Below, piece after piece: positions 27,810-58,262 of a DNA stretch of 64,000 nucleotides (its first letter is position 1; every line of letters begins with the position of its first letter). The position numbers and the translations under genes are program-made. The notes beneath the pieces are model-generated. The model made no database searches and was not told the DNA's origin. It was given only the letters and a program-made list of their open reading frames with translations. Source of the stretch: Selaginella moellendorffii (taxonomy: Eukaryota > Plantae > Lycopodiophyta); assembly GCF_000143415.4 (NCBI RefSeq), contig NW_003314262.1:2301046-2365045 (forward strand). The letters run 5' to 3'.

Positions 27810-29058
<1,249 letters not shown>

Positions 29059-29266
29059 CTTAGAGATAGATGGTTTGAAAGTTTGATCGATCGATTGGAT
29101 CCATTTGCGTGGTTTTATAGCACGAATCGTTGTAAACTAGTAGTATTTGTGCATGGCTTTGGAGGACAAAAGAACATGAGGAGCGCCAGGCAAAGGTCGT
29201 GCGTTATATTTTTAGGTAGACCTAACCCTAATGCTCTGTACTATTTCCGTGCCCTAAAAGACCGGG

Positions 29267-29274
29267 GCGGGAAA
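29267..29274 (-). promoter_or_regulatory. E2F consensus TTTCCCGC about 45 bp upstream of the OTU-RPC9 ATG, with telo-box-like motifs nearby
   Basis: GCGGGAAA at 29267-29274; AACCCTAA near 29224; TAGGGTT just before the ATG. Confidence 0.45.
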
Positions 29275-29318
29275 ATGGCCACAGAAGCCCTAAAATCTAA
29301 AACCCTGTGCTAGGGTTC

Positions 29319-30938
29319 ATGGGCGCGATCGACGAGGACGAGGGCTCTTCCTGGCTGCGCCCCGCCCGGCGGATTTTCCAGGTTCCTTACATTGATCGCG
29401 TGCTGCGCAGCAAGGGGCTGCGCCGGATCGTGGGCTATCCCTACAGCGCCGGCGACTGCCTTTTCGATTCCGTGCTCTATCTCCTGGGCGAGGAGGAGGC
29501 CTACGAGAGCTCCGTGTGCCTCCGGCGGGCGATGGTGAGCTTGTACAGGGAGAAATTCCACCGCAAGGACCCCAAGGCGATGGAGTGGATGGAGAATTTC
29601 CTGGTGCTGGAGAATTTGCAGGAGCTCCACCCAGAGCTGGGGAGGATCAAGCTCACAGAGAAGGACGCCGCGCTGGTCTACTTGTGTAAGATGCGGCTGA
29701 GCGCCTCGTGTGGGGGGCTCTGGGGGGATCACTTCTGCGCATTTTGGTTGCAAGAGCTCCTGGGGAGGCCGATAGAGATCTGGCTCGCGGACACTGGGAA
29801 GATCTTGGGCGACGAGGAAGATCACAGTGACAACGTTATGCGGCTCGTCTACCATAGCAACTATCATGGGTTCTCGTTTGCTCACTACGAGCCAGTGGTG
29901 GCGTTCGAGCGGATGGAGAGGTTTCGCTGGAGCTCTCTACAGGTGATTCACAGGAAGAGATTTATGGAGGACGACTTGGAGGACGAGGTGCTTGAGGAGG
30001 AGACCGAGACGGAGAGTGACAATGACGAGGAGGAGGACGACGATGACGAGCCACCGCCGCTTCCTCCTGAAAGCTCGCAAGGTTGCTCTCGAGCTCCATG
30101 GCTTGAAGATGACAATCCCGAACGGCCGGATAGATTGGTGAGCGTTTCCAGCGCGATCGAGGGCGAGGAGATGGATGAAAGTGCTACTGCGAGAGTGGAG
30201 GAACAGGAAGTTGCCGAGACACTCAAGGAATTCTCGAGTGACATCAAAACGGCTGGCGGCTCCACCAATAAACTGCCGGGTTCTCGTCACCTTCAGCCGA
30301 AACGGTTGAAAACGGACAGTCCTTCTCTCGGTGAGTCTACTGTGGAGATTTCTGTCCGCCAGCCCGATAAGCAAGAGCCAACGGCAAGGAGAGAACCACT
30401 CAACACAAAAGTGTAAGTGAGTTTTCCTCCTTTCGTTGAGTTTGTGATGGATTTCTTCGTTTTTCCTGGCAGTCTCGAAGCTGATTGTGGCCGGCTGAGC
30501 AACTTTGAAGTGCTCGATCTTCTGCAAAGCAGGGATGGCATCAGCCAGTCGGAAGTTTTGGTATGCTCGCAACCCGCGGAGTCTGGATGTGTTTATGATG
30601 GTTGGCTCTCCTCGACAGGTCCGTAGATATCTCCTCCAGACCCCGGCAGCGTCGCAGAGCATCGAAGACTTGAGAAAACTTTCTCGAGAGCCACTGATCC
30701 GTCGACTTTGCCCGCTGGAACGCATCCAGATAGCAAACTTAAGGCCCGATCCAGTCCAGCTCTACTTGGTACGTGAAAGTTTTTCTCGCATCAGATCGGC
30801 TCTAAAGGATGGCTTTTTTTTCTCTCTGTTCTTCGCGAGCAGATTATCCAAAACATCCAGAAGAGATTTTCCAACGACGAGATCGATGCCATGGTTGCTA
30901 CTGTGAACAGATTCTTGACAGAGCCACAGAAAGTTTGA
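29319..30938 (+). CDS. OTU-like cysteine protease - acidic linker - RNA polymerase III subunit RPC9/C17 (Rpb4 family) fusion, 475 aa (exons 29319-30412, 30473-30560, 30619-30768, 30843-30938)
   Basis: Exon 1 has the OTU motifs GDCLFDSV...LRRAMV...WGDHF...LGRPIEIW...LVYH...HYEPV. Splicing gives KVLEADCGRLSNFEVLDLL...SEVL|VRRYLLQTPA...LERIQIANLRP..QLYL|IIQNIQKRFSNDEIDAMVATV, the RPC9/CRCP signature. All introns are GT-AG and in frame. Confidence 0.85.
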
Positions 30939-31267
30939 TCGATCTTCCCAAAATCACAGCGCCAAAGAGCCAAAGAACCAAAGTTCTGTGGAAAAGAGAG
31001 TTTTTATTTTATTTTTTTCATTCCTTGTACAGAGGAAGGAATTTATGTAAATTTCAACCGTTGATCATGGCCTGGATCCGACGGTGATAGTGGCGCCAAT
31101 TGGCGGCTCTACGCATGCATGCACGAAGCTTAAGCTTTGATAAGAAGGCCAATTGGACAGGAGAATGGAACCCCATCTGTTCTTCTCCCGCGTGTTCTTG
31201 AGGTAAGCGCTCTTCAAGTCTGGATGATCTTCGGGTGCGCTGATCGTCTATTCTTGCCCAGAATATC

Positions 31268-32988
31268 ATGGCTTCTCGTCGGATCTGCCTAGTTCTCCTA
31301 GCATTGCTACTGGTTCTCCAGGCCGTCGTCGCGCGGGGAGGATTCCGGCTCGATGCGGCGTCCAATGGCGATCGAGAGCCGCGGCATCGCGATCGCGAAG
31401 ACGAGGGTGAGGACGATGATCGCGAAGGAGGCAAAGATCACGATGAGGATGATCGCGAAGGAGGCAAACATCGCGATGAGGACGACGATGAAGGGCACAG
31501 CTCGAAGCACAAGGGCAGGAACCCATTTGTTCTTGAGAAGCCTGTGGAGATCGTGAGCACCGAGGCGGGGAAGATCCACGTTCTTCCCGGCAGGAAGGAC
31601 AAGGCTGGCGTTTTGGGATCGAACAACATTGGTCTAAACTTCATCACAATGGAGCCCAAGGCGCTCCTCCTGCCGCAGTACATCGATGCTCCTTGCGTCC
31701 TCTACGTTCTCAAAGGTTCTTGGGATCTTTTTCTTGGTCGAGGAGCTTCTTTTCTTCGTTTCTTTTCAGGAAAGATGAGACTTGGATGGGTGGAAGATGG
31801 ATTGAACCAGCAAGACCTTGAAGCTGGAGATATCTACGTGATTCCTGGAGGCCTCGTCTTTTACATCCTTAACACGGATGAGGCACAGAGGCTGCGAGTT
31901 TTTGGCATGTTCGACACCTCAGAAAGTCTCGAGACTGGAGTCTTCCAAGTAAGCTGATTTGCTTAGCATCATTGTTTTGATTAGAGGCTTTTCTCTGGCA
32001 GTCCGCGTTTGTTGGTGGTGGAACGAATCCACTGACCATTCTCTCAGGTTTCGACTCGGACGTTCTAGCTGCGTCCTTCAAGGTCAAGTAGCCTGGATTT
32101 TCCTCGAAACTTTTCTGAAAACTCTTTCAGGTGTCGTCTGAGGAAGTGATTGAAGTGCTGAGCAACCAGGACCAAGGTCCGATCGTCTACACATCGCAGG
32201 CACGGTTCCAGGAGCTTGTTTCCAGGAAATCAAAGAGCTCAAGAGCCTCCTGGCCCTGGTCCTGGTCCTGGTTGAACTACATTCCCAGCTTTTCGTCGGA
32301 GCTCTTTGACAATGGTGGCGTTAAGTCCAGTTCGCCTGCCAAGCCTTTCAACCTCTTTAAGAAAAAGCCCGACTTCGAGAACGACAACGGCCGGGCAATT
32401 ACTGTGGATGGACGCCAGTACGCTCCGTTGCGAAACGCTAGCGTTGGAGTTTTTGGAGTCTCGCTGAAACCCGTAAGTCTTCCGGGTTTCATCCGTTTCT
32501 CCACAAACCATTTTCCTTCCTTGTTTTTGTCTAGGCCGCTATTCTTGCTCCACACTGGAATCCACGAGCAGCCGAAATCGCTCTAGTGACCAAAGGCCAA
32601 GGCGTCTTCCAGATCTCTTTTCCAAACGGTACCAGCGCGCTCAACAAGTCCGTCAAGGAGGGCACAATCGTCTTTGTTCCTCGCTACTTCCCGATGAGCC
32701 AGATTGCTTCTCGCGAGGGTGCTCTCGAGTTTGTGGGATTCAGCACGTCGGCGGCACCCAATAATCCCCAGTTCCTGTGTGGTACGTTTGGTGTTTCTCC
32801 CTTGTTCTACGCTAACTTTGTGACGTGTTTTAGGTGCGAGCTCGGTCTTGAAAGCTTTAGACGAGGAGACACTCTCGACGGCATTTGCGGCGCCACCGGA
32901 AAAACTGAGGGATTTTCTCGGATGGCAAAAGGATGCTGTCATTCTTGCCGGATTTGTGGAGGAAGACTATACCGCCAGATTTTTCTAG
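31268..32988 (+). CDS. Vicilin/7S-globulin-like bicupin protein, multi-exon
   Basis: Signal peptide, acidic DDDREGGK repeats, NPFVL, FITMEPKALLLPQYIDA, GDIYVIPGG, PFNLFKKKPDFENDNG, APHWNPRAAE, FVPRYFPMSQIASREG.LEFVGFSTSA..NNPQFL; stop TAG at 32986-32988. Confidence 0.93.
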
Positions 32989-35359: not shown

Positions 35360-36100
35360 GGGTACCCCTACTCCCCCACTTCCATCTTGAAGGGAAGGCC
35401 CAAGCCCCTAGGAAGGGCGAAGACTAATGAGCCATTAGGTATTCAAATAGGGCATCACATCATATGAGCTGGGAGCATTGCAATAAGTTTCCCTTCCAGG
35501 AGCGAGAGTTACTTTTAAACACTTCCTTCGGTGGCCCTTCCAACACCACCCAAATCCATGCTCACTTCCACCTAAGGCCCCTAAGCCCCAATCTCAACTT
35601 CAAGTCAATTTGAAAGCATCATTGGAGGTTCTTTCAAGACTAGTTTCTGGATATTACTATCCTTATTATACTTTTGGAACCCCCTACAATGCCCTCCCCC
35701 CCCCGGGAGACACACGTTTTAGGCTTTCACCCATGATCTATATTGGTATTCGGACTCAGTCTCGGACTTGATCTTGGACTTAATCTCGGACTCAACCTCA
35801 AACTTAGTCTTAGACTTGGTCTCAGACTCGATCTTGGACTCAATCTCGGACCCAATCTTGGACTCTGTCTCAGACTCGACCTTGGACTTGGTCTCGGACT
35901 TGATCTTGGATCTCATACTCGGTCTCAAACTTGGTCTCAAACTCGGTCTCGGACTTGATTTTGGATTTGGTCTCGAACTTGGTCTTTGGTCTCGAACTTG
36001 GTCTCAGAGTTAATTTCGAACTCGATCTCGAATTGGGTCTCATTTGATAAACTTTTTATCATTTCGGTTGTGTTTTTGGGGATCCTTTAGCCTACGACAT
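35360..36100 (-). mobile_element. Decayed fragment of the long satellite-bearing LTR family
   Basis: Colinear with 57200-58300 (ggctttcaccc followed by the GGACTC/GGTCTC array), with many C-to-T and G-to-A changes. Confidence 0.75.
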
Positions 36101-47399: not shown

Positions 47400-49336
47400 T
47401 CTTGGTCCTTCTAGTGAGTTGTTCTCTCATGGATATTGGGTTCAATTTAGCCTTATATTGCCCTGCCTTTAAATCTTGTGCTTCCACTCTAGATCTTTTT
47501 TCTTAAACATTCGCCAATACCACTAGGTTCCTACCTTGTTGCAAAGCTATTACAAATCAATTGAACCAATTTATTCTAAAGATAAGTCAAATCTCACAAT
47601 GTCTAAAATAATGAAATCTATATCTAATTTCTATGTCCCTACTTCGACTTAAGTACCTCATCGATGCTTTGGCTACTTTAAACAAACTCTATGGTCCTTG
47701 GTTCACCCAGCTGTTGCATTGTTAGTTCATCTTGCCATACTATATTTGCAGCCACATAATTATCCGAAACACTTGTGTCAATAAGGATTTTAACAAATTT
47801 ACCTTTGAGCTTCTCTCAAAGGGCTAGTAGATGTTGCAAACGACTCTTTATCAAAGTCGCTCATGTAATGAACAATTTTGAGTTTAAGACTAGATTACAT
47901 ACTTCAATTTGGACTTCACTTGATTTAATGGCCATATTGATTCTAGCCTTCTTCGAATAGGGACATTTTCTCTAAAAGTGTCCTGCTTCACCGCAATTGT
48001 AACATATGTTGTTTCCCACGCTACTAGTAGACTTTGTTTTCTTATAAGTAGATTTGTCCCTTTTTACTTGACTCCCTCACATACTTACTTTTTAGCCACT
48101 AAATTTTCCTTTCCAAAACCCTAAGGATTTATTCTTAGAGAAACTCTGTCTAGATTTCCCTTTGCCATATATCCCTTTTGGTTTGGCTTCTTTCCCAAAT
48201 GTGGATCCTAACCCTATTGTATTCCCTTTTCGTAGGTTATCATTGAAATACATCTTAATAGCTACATCAAATGCTTCCTTGTAGTTGGTAGGGTTGCAAC
48301 GCATCATCTCACCTCAAGCCCAAGTTTGTAAATCTAATATGAAGGCATAGAATGTGTCTATGCCATTATAAGGATCTTCTTGGCCATAAACACATTCACA
48401 CATACTCTTAAATGGTTCTTATTTGCTTCAGCCTACTTAGCTCATTCCTTAGATATAAAGTAGCATTTTAAGGAACATAAGTTGCACAAATTCTTGCCTT
48501 CATCACTTCCTAAGTGGCTACCAGTCCTTTGTTAGCCTCTATTGTTCTCTACCCAGACTTAGTGCTATCTAATAAGTATAGTTTTGCATATAGGATCTTT
48601 TCTGAGCTTAGTAATTGCAATGCTTAAAAAAATCTTCCATATTGTAAAACCAATCCTCTATCACCTTATAATCATTCACTCCCTTGAAGATTGATAGGGG
48701 CTTTAGTTTGTACTTGAGAACTATTTAAAGGATTAATTCTACTTTAGTTTGCTCGATTTTATTTAGTTTAGCCTCAGTCCCCACCAAAGGGTCCATGCCT
48801 TTTACGTTCTAGCATCTATAATCTTTTACTTTTTCTTCCTTCATCACACTTTAGCTTATTTATGAGGGTCTCTAATAGGGCATTGATCTGTTTCAATTGT
48901 CCTTCTAAAGAGTCCAATCGAGCCTTGGACAACCAAACCTCACCACCAAATTCCTATTTAAAAGTTTTTTTATTGGAGTCCTCCTTATGCAAAGATTCTT
49001 CATCCATAACTTTTTGTTCAATTAAAGCTCCATCTTTGAAGGAGGTATTGTCTCTGCCTTAGTTTACTTATGCCCTACTTTACCATCTCTTAGCAATCTG
49101 CCTCTAACTTCCACTAAAATTGAGGAAAAGGTTCTGATACCAAATTATAAACTTATGAATTTGGACTTCTTAAAAGGTCACTTAACCTATTATTATTCAA
49201 ACCCAAGGACACTTAACCCCAAGTATCCCAAAACCTTTAATCAATTGGAAAAAGAGGTGCACTATTATTCATGAGCCCTTTCTCTCTATATTTAAACTCC
49301 ATAAATCGTTTCCCAAGTCATTCTCTAGTTGCTTAT
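47400..49336 (-). mobile_element. Ty3/gypsy gag-protease relic with PBS and a short TRIM-type 5' LTR
   Basis: Zinc knuckle CYNCGEAGHF*RKCP (~47960-48010); protease ILIDTSVSDNYV (degenerate DTGA); PBS reverse complement tctgatacca (~49133-49142); LTR ~49146-49336 homologous to the TRIM LTR. Confidence 0.82.
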
Positions 49337-57662: not shown

Positions 57663-58262
57663 CCGGACTCGGACTCGGACTCGGACTCGGACTCGGACTC
57701 GGACTCGGACTCGGGCTCGGGCTCGGTCTCGGCCTCGGCCTCGGTCTCGGTCTCGGTCCCGATCTCGGTCTCGGTCTCGGTCCCGGTCTCGGTCCCAGTC
57801 TCGGTCTCGACTTCGGACTCCATCTCGGACTCCATCTCGGGTCCATCTCGGACTCCATCTCGGACTCCATTTCGGGTCCATCTCGGGTCCACCTCAGACT
57901 CCATCTCGGACTCCATCTCGGACTCCATCTCAGGTCCATCTCGGACTCCACTTCGGACTCCAACTCGGGTCCATCTCGGGTCCACCTCGGACTCCAACTC
58001 GGACTCCATCTCGGACTCCATCTCGGATTCCACTTCGGACTCCAACTCGGGTCCATCTCGGGTCCACCTCGGACTCCACTTCGGACTCCATCTCGGACTC
58101 CATCTCGGGTCCATCTCGGACTCCACTTCCGACTCCAACTCGGGTCCATCTCGGACTCCACTTCGGACTCCAACTCGGGTCCATCTCGGACTCCACTTCG
58201 GACTCCAACTCGAGTCCATCTCGGACTCCACTTCGGACTCCAAGTCGAGTCCATCTCGGACA
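57663..58262. repeat. Hexamer-based satellite with higher-order units inside an LTR
   Basis: (GGACTC)n, then (GGTCTC)n, then 12-mer variants GGACTCCATCTC / GGACTCCACTTC / GGACTCCAACTC / GGGTCCATCTC. Confidence 0.97.

Follow-up and report, generated by a model that had tools for sequence, protein, structure and literature searches.

An expressed gene of Selaginella moellendorffii joining an OTU-like domain, related to those of Helentron transposons, to an RPC9-like module of RNA polymerase III

Genes composed of host and transposon sequence are already known, SETMAR being one example of such a fusion, and so are the OTU open reading frames (ORFs) of Helentron transposons. Here we describe LOC112349395, a gene of the lycophyte Selaginella moellendorffii in which an OTU-like domain is joined in frame to a module resembling RPC9 (also C17 or CRCP), a stalk subunit of RNA polymerase III (Pol III). 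This gene, referred to as OTU-RPC9, occupies positions 29319-30938 of the 64,000-nucleotide (nt) stretch that was analysed, hereafter the window (RefSeq assembly GCF_000143415.4, contig NW_003314262.1, positions 2,301,046 to 2,365,045 of the forward strand). All positions given below are those of the window.

An OTU ORF upstream of the array of Rep, helicase and endonuclease is a described accessory of Helentron/HLE2 elements (PMC4067079, PMC11417382, PMC9741609). HLE2 elements have been reported in land plants (PMC11417382), the OTU domains of transposons have never been assayed (PMC9741609), and domesticated Helitron-derived VTD proteases have been described (PMC9741609). We found that the Helentron/HLE2 OTU ORFs were the closest relatives of residues 22-195 of the Selaginella protein, with which they have the motifs Y..GDCLFD, GLWGD and HYEP in common. 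Unlike them, the Selaginella copy lies outside any recognisable element; it is preceded by a promoter region of host type, and splicing joins it to a host gene. With the cellular and viral OTU proteins (Otu2, OTUD1/3/5, nairovirus vOTU and Wolbachia OTU) it shares the fold, with Z scores of 11-13 to OTUD and vOTU chains, and its Cys box and G-WG motif align with those of nairovirus vOTU in a profile search; however, the similarity in sequence is marginal (E-values of 0.06-0.5 in the PDB profile search), and the Asp three residues before the Cys is absent. As in SETMAR and the VTD proteases, a transposon-derived domain appears to have been joined to a host protein, or recruited as one, and is expressed from a host locus, whereas the partner of the Selaginella domain is a core RNA polymerase subunit.

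The other end of the protein has its counterparts in RPC9 of human (7a6h_D), yeast (5fj8_D, 2ckz_A) and Schizosaccharomyces pombe (3ayh_A), with which it has in common an Rpb4-family domain and an N-terminal xKVLE...LSNFEVL; its C-terminal helical part aligns to human residues 50-128. It differs from these in having no start codon of its own, an N-terminal extension of 362 amino acids (aa) and no acidic tail, and human RPC9 has a longer loop from the N-terminal helix to the core. We found no earlier case in which a protease or deubiquitinase domain is joined to a stalk subunit of any polymerase, and our literature search yielded no paper mentioning LOC112349395, the OTU-RPC9 architecture, or RPC9 or Helentrons in Selaginella.

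Gene structure and transcripts of OTU-RPC9

The OTU-RPC9 gene consists of four exons (29319-30412, 30473-30560, 30619-30768 and 30843-30938), which give a coding sequence (CDS) of 1428 nt and 475 codons. Its three introns (30413-30472, 30561-30618 and 30769-30842) measure 60, 58 and 74 nt and are all of the GT..AG type. Intron 1 is in phase 2, with the donor AAAGT/GTAAGT at 30412/30413 and the acceptor CAG/T at 30472/30473. The 475-aa translation was identical to RefSeq XP_024539513.1 ("uncharacterized protein LOC112349395"), in agreement with the exons, the ORF and the phase-2 splice coordinates that a preliminary description had read from the letters of the DNA. A second RefSeq protein of 475 aa, XP_024531737.1 (LOC112346614), is 98% identical and comes from the other-haplotype scaffold GL377581.1. 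These two allelic products were the only ones of OTU-RPC9 in the protein collections, corresponding to one copy per haplotype. The fused gene model is already public, but it is unnamed and uncharacterised.

Twenty public runs contained the OTU-RPC9 stretch, and four of them from four studies (X1, X4, X8 and X13) were compared over 28900-31300. To judge from how small they are and from their lack of introns, the runs are transcriptome assemblies. Contig X4#13 (1419 nt) was continuous over 29323-30412, 30473-30559, 30618-30767 and 30842-30933, that is, from 4 nt past the ATG to 5 nt short of the stop, and lacked all three introns. The joints across introns 1, 2 and 3 were found in X1, X4 and X8, and all three exon joints were present in X1. 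The in-frame joint 30412/30473, which the preliminary description had singled out for checking, was therefore found in contigs of three runs, each from a different study. Contig X8#20 links 30278-30412 with exons 2-4 and with the 3' untranslated region (UTR; 30939-31071), ending at 31071. In the fourth run, X13, contigs were present at 29333-30220 only, which is within exon 1 and leaves the joints outside its coverage; the single-nucleotide polymorphisms in its contigs match or resemble the second haplotype. OTU-RPC9 is one expressed gene with one spliced mRNA. The single transcription and translation unit of the preliminary description, with the OTU part fused through an acidic linker of about 165 aa to a complete RPC9-like module, was in this way confirmed by the spliced contigs.

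The RNA contigs begin at about 29310-29333, one X1 contig (X1#1) beginning at 29310 right after adapter letters, and none of the four runs had contig coverage of 29062-29304. These observations suggested that transcripts start near 29305-29310 and have a very short 5' UTR. The proximal promoter and transcript start were placed at 29224-29317 on the + strand from contig starts and a motif count, with two telo-box-like AACCCTA motifs at 29224-29230 (+) and 29311-29317 (-). AACCCTA occurs 18 times in the window, where 7.2 occurrences are expected, and none of 100 shuffles reached 18. It often stands in close pairs, mostly near gene starts (11201/11466, 15258/15303, 21249/21652, 24382/24435, 29224/29311 and 48117-48295). 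Since several other gene starts in the window also carry AACCCTA, the promoter of OTU-RPC9 looks host-like.

The OTU domain and its Helentron relatives

Codons 1-200 (29319-29918, + strand) were assigned to an OTU-fold cysteine protease domain from the Pfam match, relatives, motifs, structure and the GC content at third codon positions (GC3). The Pfam family PF02338 (OTU) aligned with residues 43-190, from the Cys box to the His box, and the match took up positions 2-128 of the 128 in the profile. Within the subfamily formed by this domain and its relatives, 10 of 21 members matched the OTU profile at E <0.01, and 3 of 10 scanned singly passed the cut-off. An AlphaFold2 (AF2) model of the domain, made with the alignment of relatives as input, had a predicted local distance difference test score (pLDDT) of 83.7 and a predicted template-modelling score (pTM) of 0.78. 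In a Foldseek comparison of this model with the PDB, all top matches were OTU deubiquitinases (nairovirus vOTU, yeast Otu2, OTUD1/3/5 and Wolbachia OTU) with a probability of 1.00. VIA-align gave Z 14.3 to Otu2 (7pl7; 144 residues, root-mean-square deviation 3.4), Z 13.2 to OTUD3 and Z >11 for some 25 more entries. An ESM Atlas model of the OTU part reached a template-modelling (TM) score of about 0.6 to OTU clusters. On the strength of the AF2 model and the Foldseek and VIA-align matches, the N-terminal 200 aa or so have the OTU (papain-like) fold. A PDB sequence search with the OTU part alone returned only spurious matches to WD40 repeats and antibodies, which were discarded.

The putative catalytic residues were located by alignment. 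Cys47 (codon 29457-29459) in GDCLFD is nearly invariant in the subfamily, Trp135 of the WGD motif (residues 135-137) is invariant, and His189 (codon 29883-29885) in HYEP is kept in all members that reach that region. The subfamily motifs can be written Y-x-x-G-D-C-L-F-D, G-L-W-G-D and H-Y-E-P. The preliminary description had noted that the usual Asp of DGxC is Ala here and had for that reason called for the activity to be tested. The substitution is real, in that the residue three before Cys47 is Ala, but it does not mark a defect of this copy, since this position is variable in the subfamily and the whole subfamily has x-G-D-C-L-F-D. Glu191, two residues after the His, is conserved as Glu or Gln, and the His-x-Glu of HYEP is the likely third-residue arrangement. 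In having a conserved acidic residue two places after the His, the subfamily is similar to nairovirus vOTUs with their Cys-His-Asp arrangement, and these vOTUs were the only PDB sequences that the family profile touched, at the E-values given above.

The relatives of the domain were collected by an exhaustive phmmer search against 1.84 billion cluster representatives, which yielded 32 proteins at E <=0.001. Six of them (P0005, P0015, P0016, P0019, P0023 and P0025) were excluded as WD40 artefacts, being long multi-stretch matches to query residues 146-194. About 25 true relatives remained, a sparse family of proteins of 100-340 aa with 26-37% identity over residues 22-195 and a best E-value of 8e-18. 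No cellular OTU deubiquitinase was found at E <0.001 among the 1.84 billion representatives. One of the relatives is a partial hypothetical protein of Taxus chinensis. Those linked to Helentrons matched with E-values of 9e-11 (P0006), 6e-7 (P0017), 1.5e-6 (P0018) and 1.2e-4 (P0029) against 1.8 billion proteins.

The genomic contexts long enough to inform were those on contigs L002 and L003 (two marine metagenomes), L004 (a Joint Genome Institute (JGI) metagenome), L007-L009, and L010 and L011. Each of the five independent element families on them has sequences for a Helitron_like_N (Rep) domain, a PIF1 helicase and an AP-type endonuclease (Exo_endo_phos) on the strand of the OTU ORF, which precedes them by 2.5-5 kb. 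This array of Rep, helicase and endonuclease downstream of the OTU ORF is the Helentron/HLE2 architecture. The elements span L002 7528-13725, L004 7496-16299, L007 9001-15518 and L010 9001-17565, all on eukaryotic metagenome contigs, and those of L007-L009 and of L010-L012 were each found on many contigs. Judged by these relatives, the OTU domain belongs to the Helentron-borne OTU family and not to the cellular OTU deubiquitinases, and as far as we can tell this link of LOC112349395 is new. The OTU domain of the preliminary description thus stood as to its fold, while its relatives proved to be Helentron-borne rather than cellular. A maximum-likelihood tree of the subfamily took the form of a star around OTU-RPC9, which did not resolve its place among the Helentron-linked lineages and gave it no sister group.

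The nearest relative, P0004 (36% identity), stands on a contig of 1.1 kb (L005). The ORF downstream of it was considered as a counterpart of RPC9 or of the linker and was rejected, being neither RPC9-like nor of any real similarity to the linker. This second ORF (L005 886-1140), which lies in another frame, is still open where the contig stops and contains a KRKR motif as well as an acidic stretch; it may be a continuation that is unspliced or frameshifted. P0003, from the same 90% cluster listing, was an unrelated sequence of 56 aa.

The domain is followed by an acidic, low-complexity linker of about 165 aa (codons 201-362, 29919-30404, + strand), which includes M285 (30171-30173). It has no real match to a Pfam family, the Atlas model of the whole protein had a mean pLDDT of 0.57, and the GC3 of the linker is 0.593. 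The linker is probably disordered.

The RPC9 module

The C-terminal 113 aa form the RPC9 module. PF03874 (RNA_pol_Rpb4) scored 33.9 bits on residues 360-475, above its gathering cut-off of 25.6 bits, and 25.9 bits on the whole OTU-RPC9 protein. The best PDB sequence match was human RPC9 (E 3.8e-6, query 32-108 versus chain residues 50-128), followed by yeast C17 and S. pombe Rpc9, which bore out the RPC9 identity proposed in the preliminary description. The only polymerase chains among the PDB matches at E <=10 were RPC9 of these three species, and no chain of the RPB4 type was among them. The ESM Atlas model of residues 365-474 reached TM 0.85 to an RPC9 cluster, and its 40 nearest feature hits were all of the Rpb4 family; it was used in place of a single-sequence AF2 model of the module, which was unusable (pLDDT 41). 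By these matches and this model, the module is closer to RPC9 than to its paralogues RPB4, RPA14 or NRPD4.

The module begins at the end of exon 1. In both human and yeast RPC9 the partner of E367 is residue 5, which places Thr363 (ACA, 30405-30407) at the position of RPC9 Met1, as had been read before; this former start is followed by AAA GT, the last letters of exon 1 (the whole being 30405-30412, + strand). Exon 2 (30473-30560) encodes the N-terminal helix region of RPC9 (VLEADCGRLSNFEVLDLLQ...), exon 3 (30619-30768) the RPC9 core with the beginning of the Rpb4/HRDC-like part, and exon 4 (30843-30938) the C-terminal helices and the TGA stop. These assignments, all on the + strand, rest on alignment and contigs for exon 2 and on Pfam, the PDB match and contigs for exons 3 and 4. 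The two haplotypes do not differ in any splice site, in the frame or in the Thr363 codon. The sole Met within the module is M461, and the nearest in-frame Met upstream, which had been put at about 80 codons away, is M285, 78 codons before the module. Any RPC9-containing product must for this reason start within exon 1. A stand-alone RPC9 has about 130-160 aa and its own start codon, whereas 362 residues precede the module here. We concluded that the module is a bona fide RPC9 that can be translated only within the upstream ORF.

Possible function, origin and competing explanations

With an OTU domain of transposon type, the gene is a host-transposon chimera. That LOC112349395 encodes a functional OTU-RPC9 fusion associated with Pol III is the account we would put first, at an even chance of being right. 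Translation from the ATG at 29319 would yield the 475-aa protein, whose OTU domain would derive from, or recently share ancestry with, the accessory OTU ORF of Helentron-type Helitrons. An acidic tether of about 165 residues would join it to RPC9, whose own start codon has become Thr. The RPC9 module may still pair with RPC8 and would then place the protease on the Pol III stalk, where it might strip ubiquitin or a ubiquitin-like modifier from subunits of Pol III or from nearby factors and might, as the preliminary description proposed, counter the turnover of Pol III. As for the origin, a Helentron OTU ORF likely inserted into the 5' region of RPC9 itself or of an RPC9 duplicate, and would have lost its stop and read through the old 5' UTR into RPC9. 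The mosaic character of the gene fits this: GC3 falls within exon 1 from 0.835 (codons 1-200) to 0.593 (linker), the RPC9 part having 0.575, and this sharp break is what a mosaic origin would give. Exon 1 runs for 1.1 kb without an intron, in contrast to the three introns of the small RPC9 part.

If the RPC9 module is functional, this would be the first case known to us of a deubiquitinase covalently built into a nuclear RNA polymerase, and ubiquitin control of Pol III would become directly testable in a plant. In any case, the gene offers a natural, single-copy, expressed Helentron-family OTU in a host context with a defined partner. We think it unlikely that the fusion is the sole RPC9 of S. 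moellendorffii; if it were, every Pol III would carry at its stalk, on a flexible tether, a catalytically competent, transposon-derived OTU deubiquitinase, a domesticated Helentron protease controlling ubiquitin-dependent turnover or regulation of Pol III.

Several results weigh against a functional fusion. The OTU plus Rpb4-family architecture was found in no other protein or organism in the protein collections or the phmmer search; the preliminary description knew of no second example, and neither these searches nor the literature provided one. The PF02338 match, although full-length, scored 21.1 bits with exon 1, 20.3 with the whole protein and 22.8 with residues 1-215, all below the cut-off of 23.3. 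A word-index protein search with the RPC9 module at E <=10 found no RPC9 of 61-194 aa, so far has the module diverged. An apparent 5' UTR as short as about 9 nt could make leaky scanning beyond the first AUG more likely, and extra internal transcription starts are still compatible with the contig data. Polymorphism in the RPC9 module also speaks on this side, and that in the OTU domain for the fusion. Between the haplotypes there are 13 differences in the CDS, of which 5 are synonymous and 8 nonsynonymous. When haplotype differences and variants in RNA contigs were counted together by region, the OTU domain had 1 nonsynonymous and 3 synonymous, the linker 4 and 3, and the RPC9 module 4 and 1, with nonsynonymous sites about 3.3-3.6 times as numerous as synonymous sites. 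These counts, far too small for significance, suggested that the OTU domain is under purifying selection and the RPC9 module hardly so. Together with the divergence of the RPC9 part, its polymorphism hints at relaxed constraint, as expected with a canonical RPC9 elsewhere.

The explanation that best withstands the evidence after that of a functional fusion, and that we regard as possible though short of probable, is a lineage-specific chimera without a role in the stalk. A canonical RPC9 elsewhere would do the job, and the chimera would be neutral, decaying or unrelated to Pol III. It would have arisen from a duplicated or captured RPC9 and a transposon OTU ORF, through capture of gene fragments in the style of Helitrons or through insertion of a block. 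That the OTU domain comes from a transposon family agrees with this, as do the 4:1 ratio of nonsynonymous to synonymous variants in the RPC9 part, the shortness (113 aa) and divergence of that part, and the failure to find an ortholog in the collections and the phmmer search. A further point is an exact 16-nt direct repeat, GAAAGTTTGATCGATC, which brackets the whole OTU-RPC9 unit with a spacing of 1852 nt and frames this 1.85-kb unit like an insertion footprint. A repeat search placed its left copy (29077-29092, +) just beyond the ATG of the divergent peroxidase gene and its right copy (30929-30944, +) over the last codons and the CDS stop; in the other haplotype the right copy has one mismatch. 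Exact direct repeats of at least 16 nt at a spacing of 200-3000 nt number three in the 64 kb outside one tandem array. The GAAAGTTTGATCGATC repeat may have been left by the insertion or duplication of a block, in which case a displaced RPC9 copy would be favoured. Neither a poly(A) nor a terminal inverted repeat or Helitron terminus was found at OTU-RPC9 that would point to a particular mechanism, and the repeat matches no known type of element. A candidate Helitron or terminal-inverted-repeat structure around the gene was rejected, as it comprised only short inverted repeats at chance level. The polymorphism of RPC9, the divergence of the module and the bracketing repeat lean towards a redundant chimeric duplicate.

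However, a chimera without a role in the stalk sits less easily with the intact ORF and the preservation of all splice sites in both haplotypes, with the retained catalytic motifs of the OTU domain, and with expression in several independent studies. The protein collections list just two allelic products, the RPC9 part can still be recognised by comparison with human RPC9, and remnants of Rep, helicase and endonuclease are absent from the 64 kb. A tblastn search with pieces of these three proteins returned nothing in the window or in the 13.6-kb allelic locus, and OTU-RPC9 is not inside a recognisable Helentron but between peroxidase and cupin genes. If the gene is a redundant duplicate, it would be a clean lycophyte example of Helitron-family sequence making a new spliced coding gene, which is useful but modest. 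An RPC9 duplicate that has become neofunctionalised, the alternative raised in the preliminary description, could also account for the gene.

It is improbable that separate products dominate at this locus, with an OTU-only protein made through the donor at 30417, an RPC9 with an acidic extension starting from M285 through an internal promoter, and the fusion as a minor product. Tandem donors, GTAA/GTGAGT, do lie 4 nt apart (30413-30418), and use of the second retains the TAA at 30414-30416, which would give an OTU-only product that is probably sensitive to nonsense-mediated decay. A minor joint of this kind (30416/30473) was present in X1, M285 offers an in-frame AUG 78 codons ahead of the RPC9 module, and transcription starts cannot be read from contigs. 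But the in-frame joint was dominant in all three runs that cover it, whereas the minor joint was found in X1 only, at a depth of 3.9 against 25.7 for the main joint (about 1/7). One contig reaches from 4 nt past the ATG to the CDS end, and no separate contig start was visible near 30100-30170 in the runs compared. Hardly credible is the view that the locus holds two independent genes, an OTU ORF ending at TAA 30416 and an RPC9 with its own start, the RefSeq fusion being an artefact of annotation: without splicing, the exon-1 ORF indeed stops at TAA 30414-30416, but RPC9 has no ATG (Thr363 at Met1, M461 the sole Met of the module), contigs from three studies splice exon 1 in frame to exon 2 in place of the two units against which the preliminary description had set its reading, and the second haplotype has an identical structure.

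The upstream neighbour of OTU-RPC9 is a class III peroxidase gene (27810-29058, - strand), which is divergent, its ATG lying 260 nt from the ATG of the fusion. Downstream, a cupin or vicilin-like gene extends from 31268 onward on the + strand, with an acidic N-terminal repeat. The order of peroxidase, OTU-RPC9 and cupin genes is the same in both haplotypes, and the ORF is intact in both. The other two direct repeats of at least 16 nt in the window lie at 35882/38329 (20 nt) and 53892/56016 (17 nt) and may be insertion footprints. A tandem array is located at 57810-58230, with units such as TCGGACTCCATCTCGG and periods near 35 and 268 nt.

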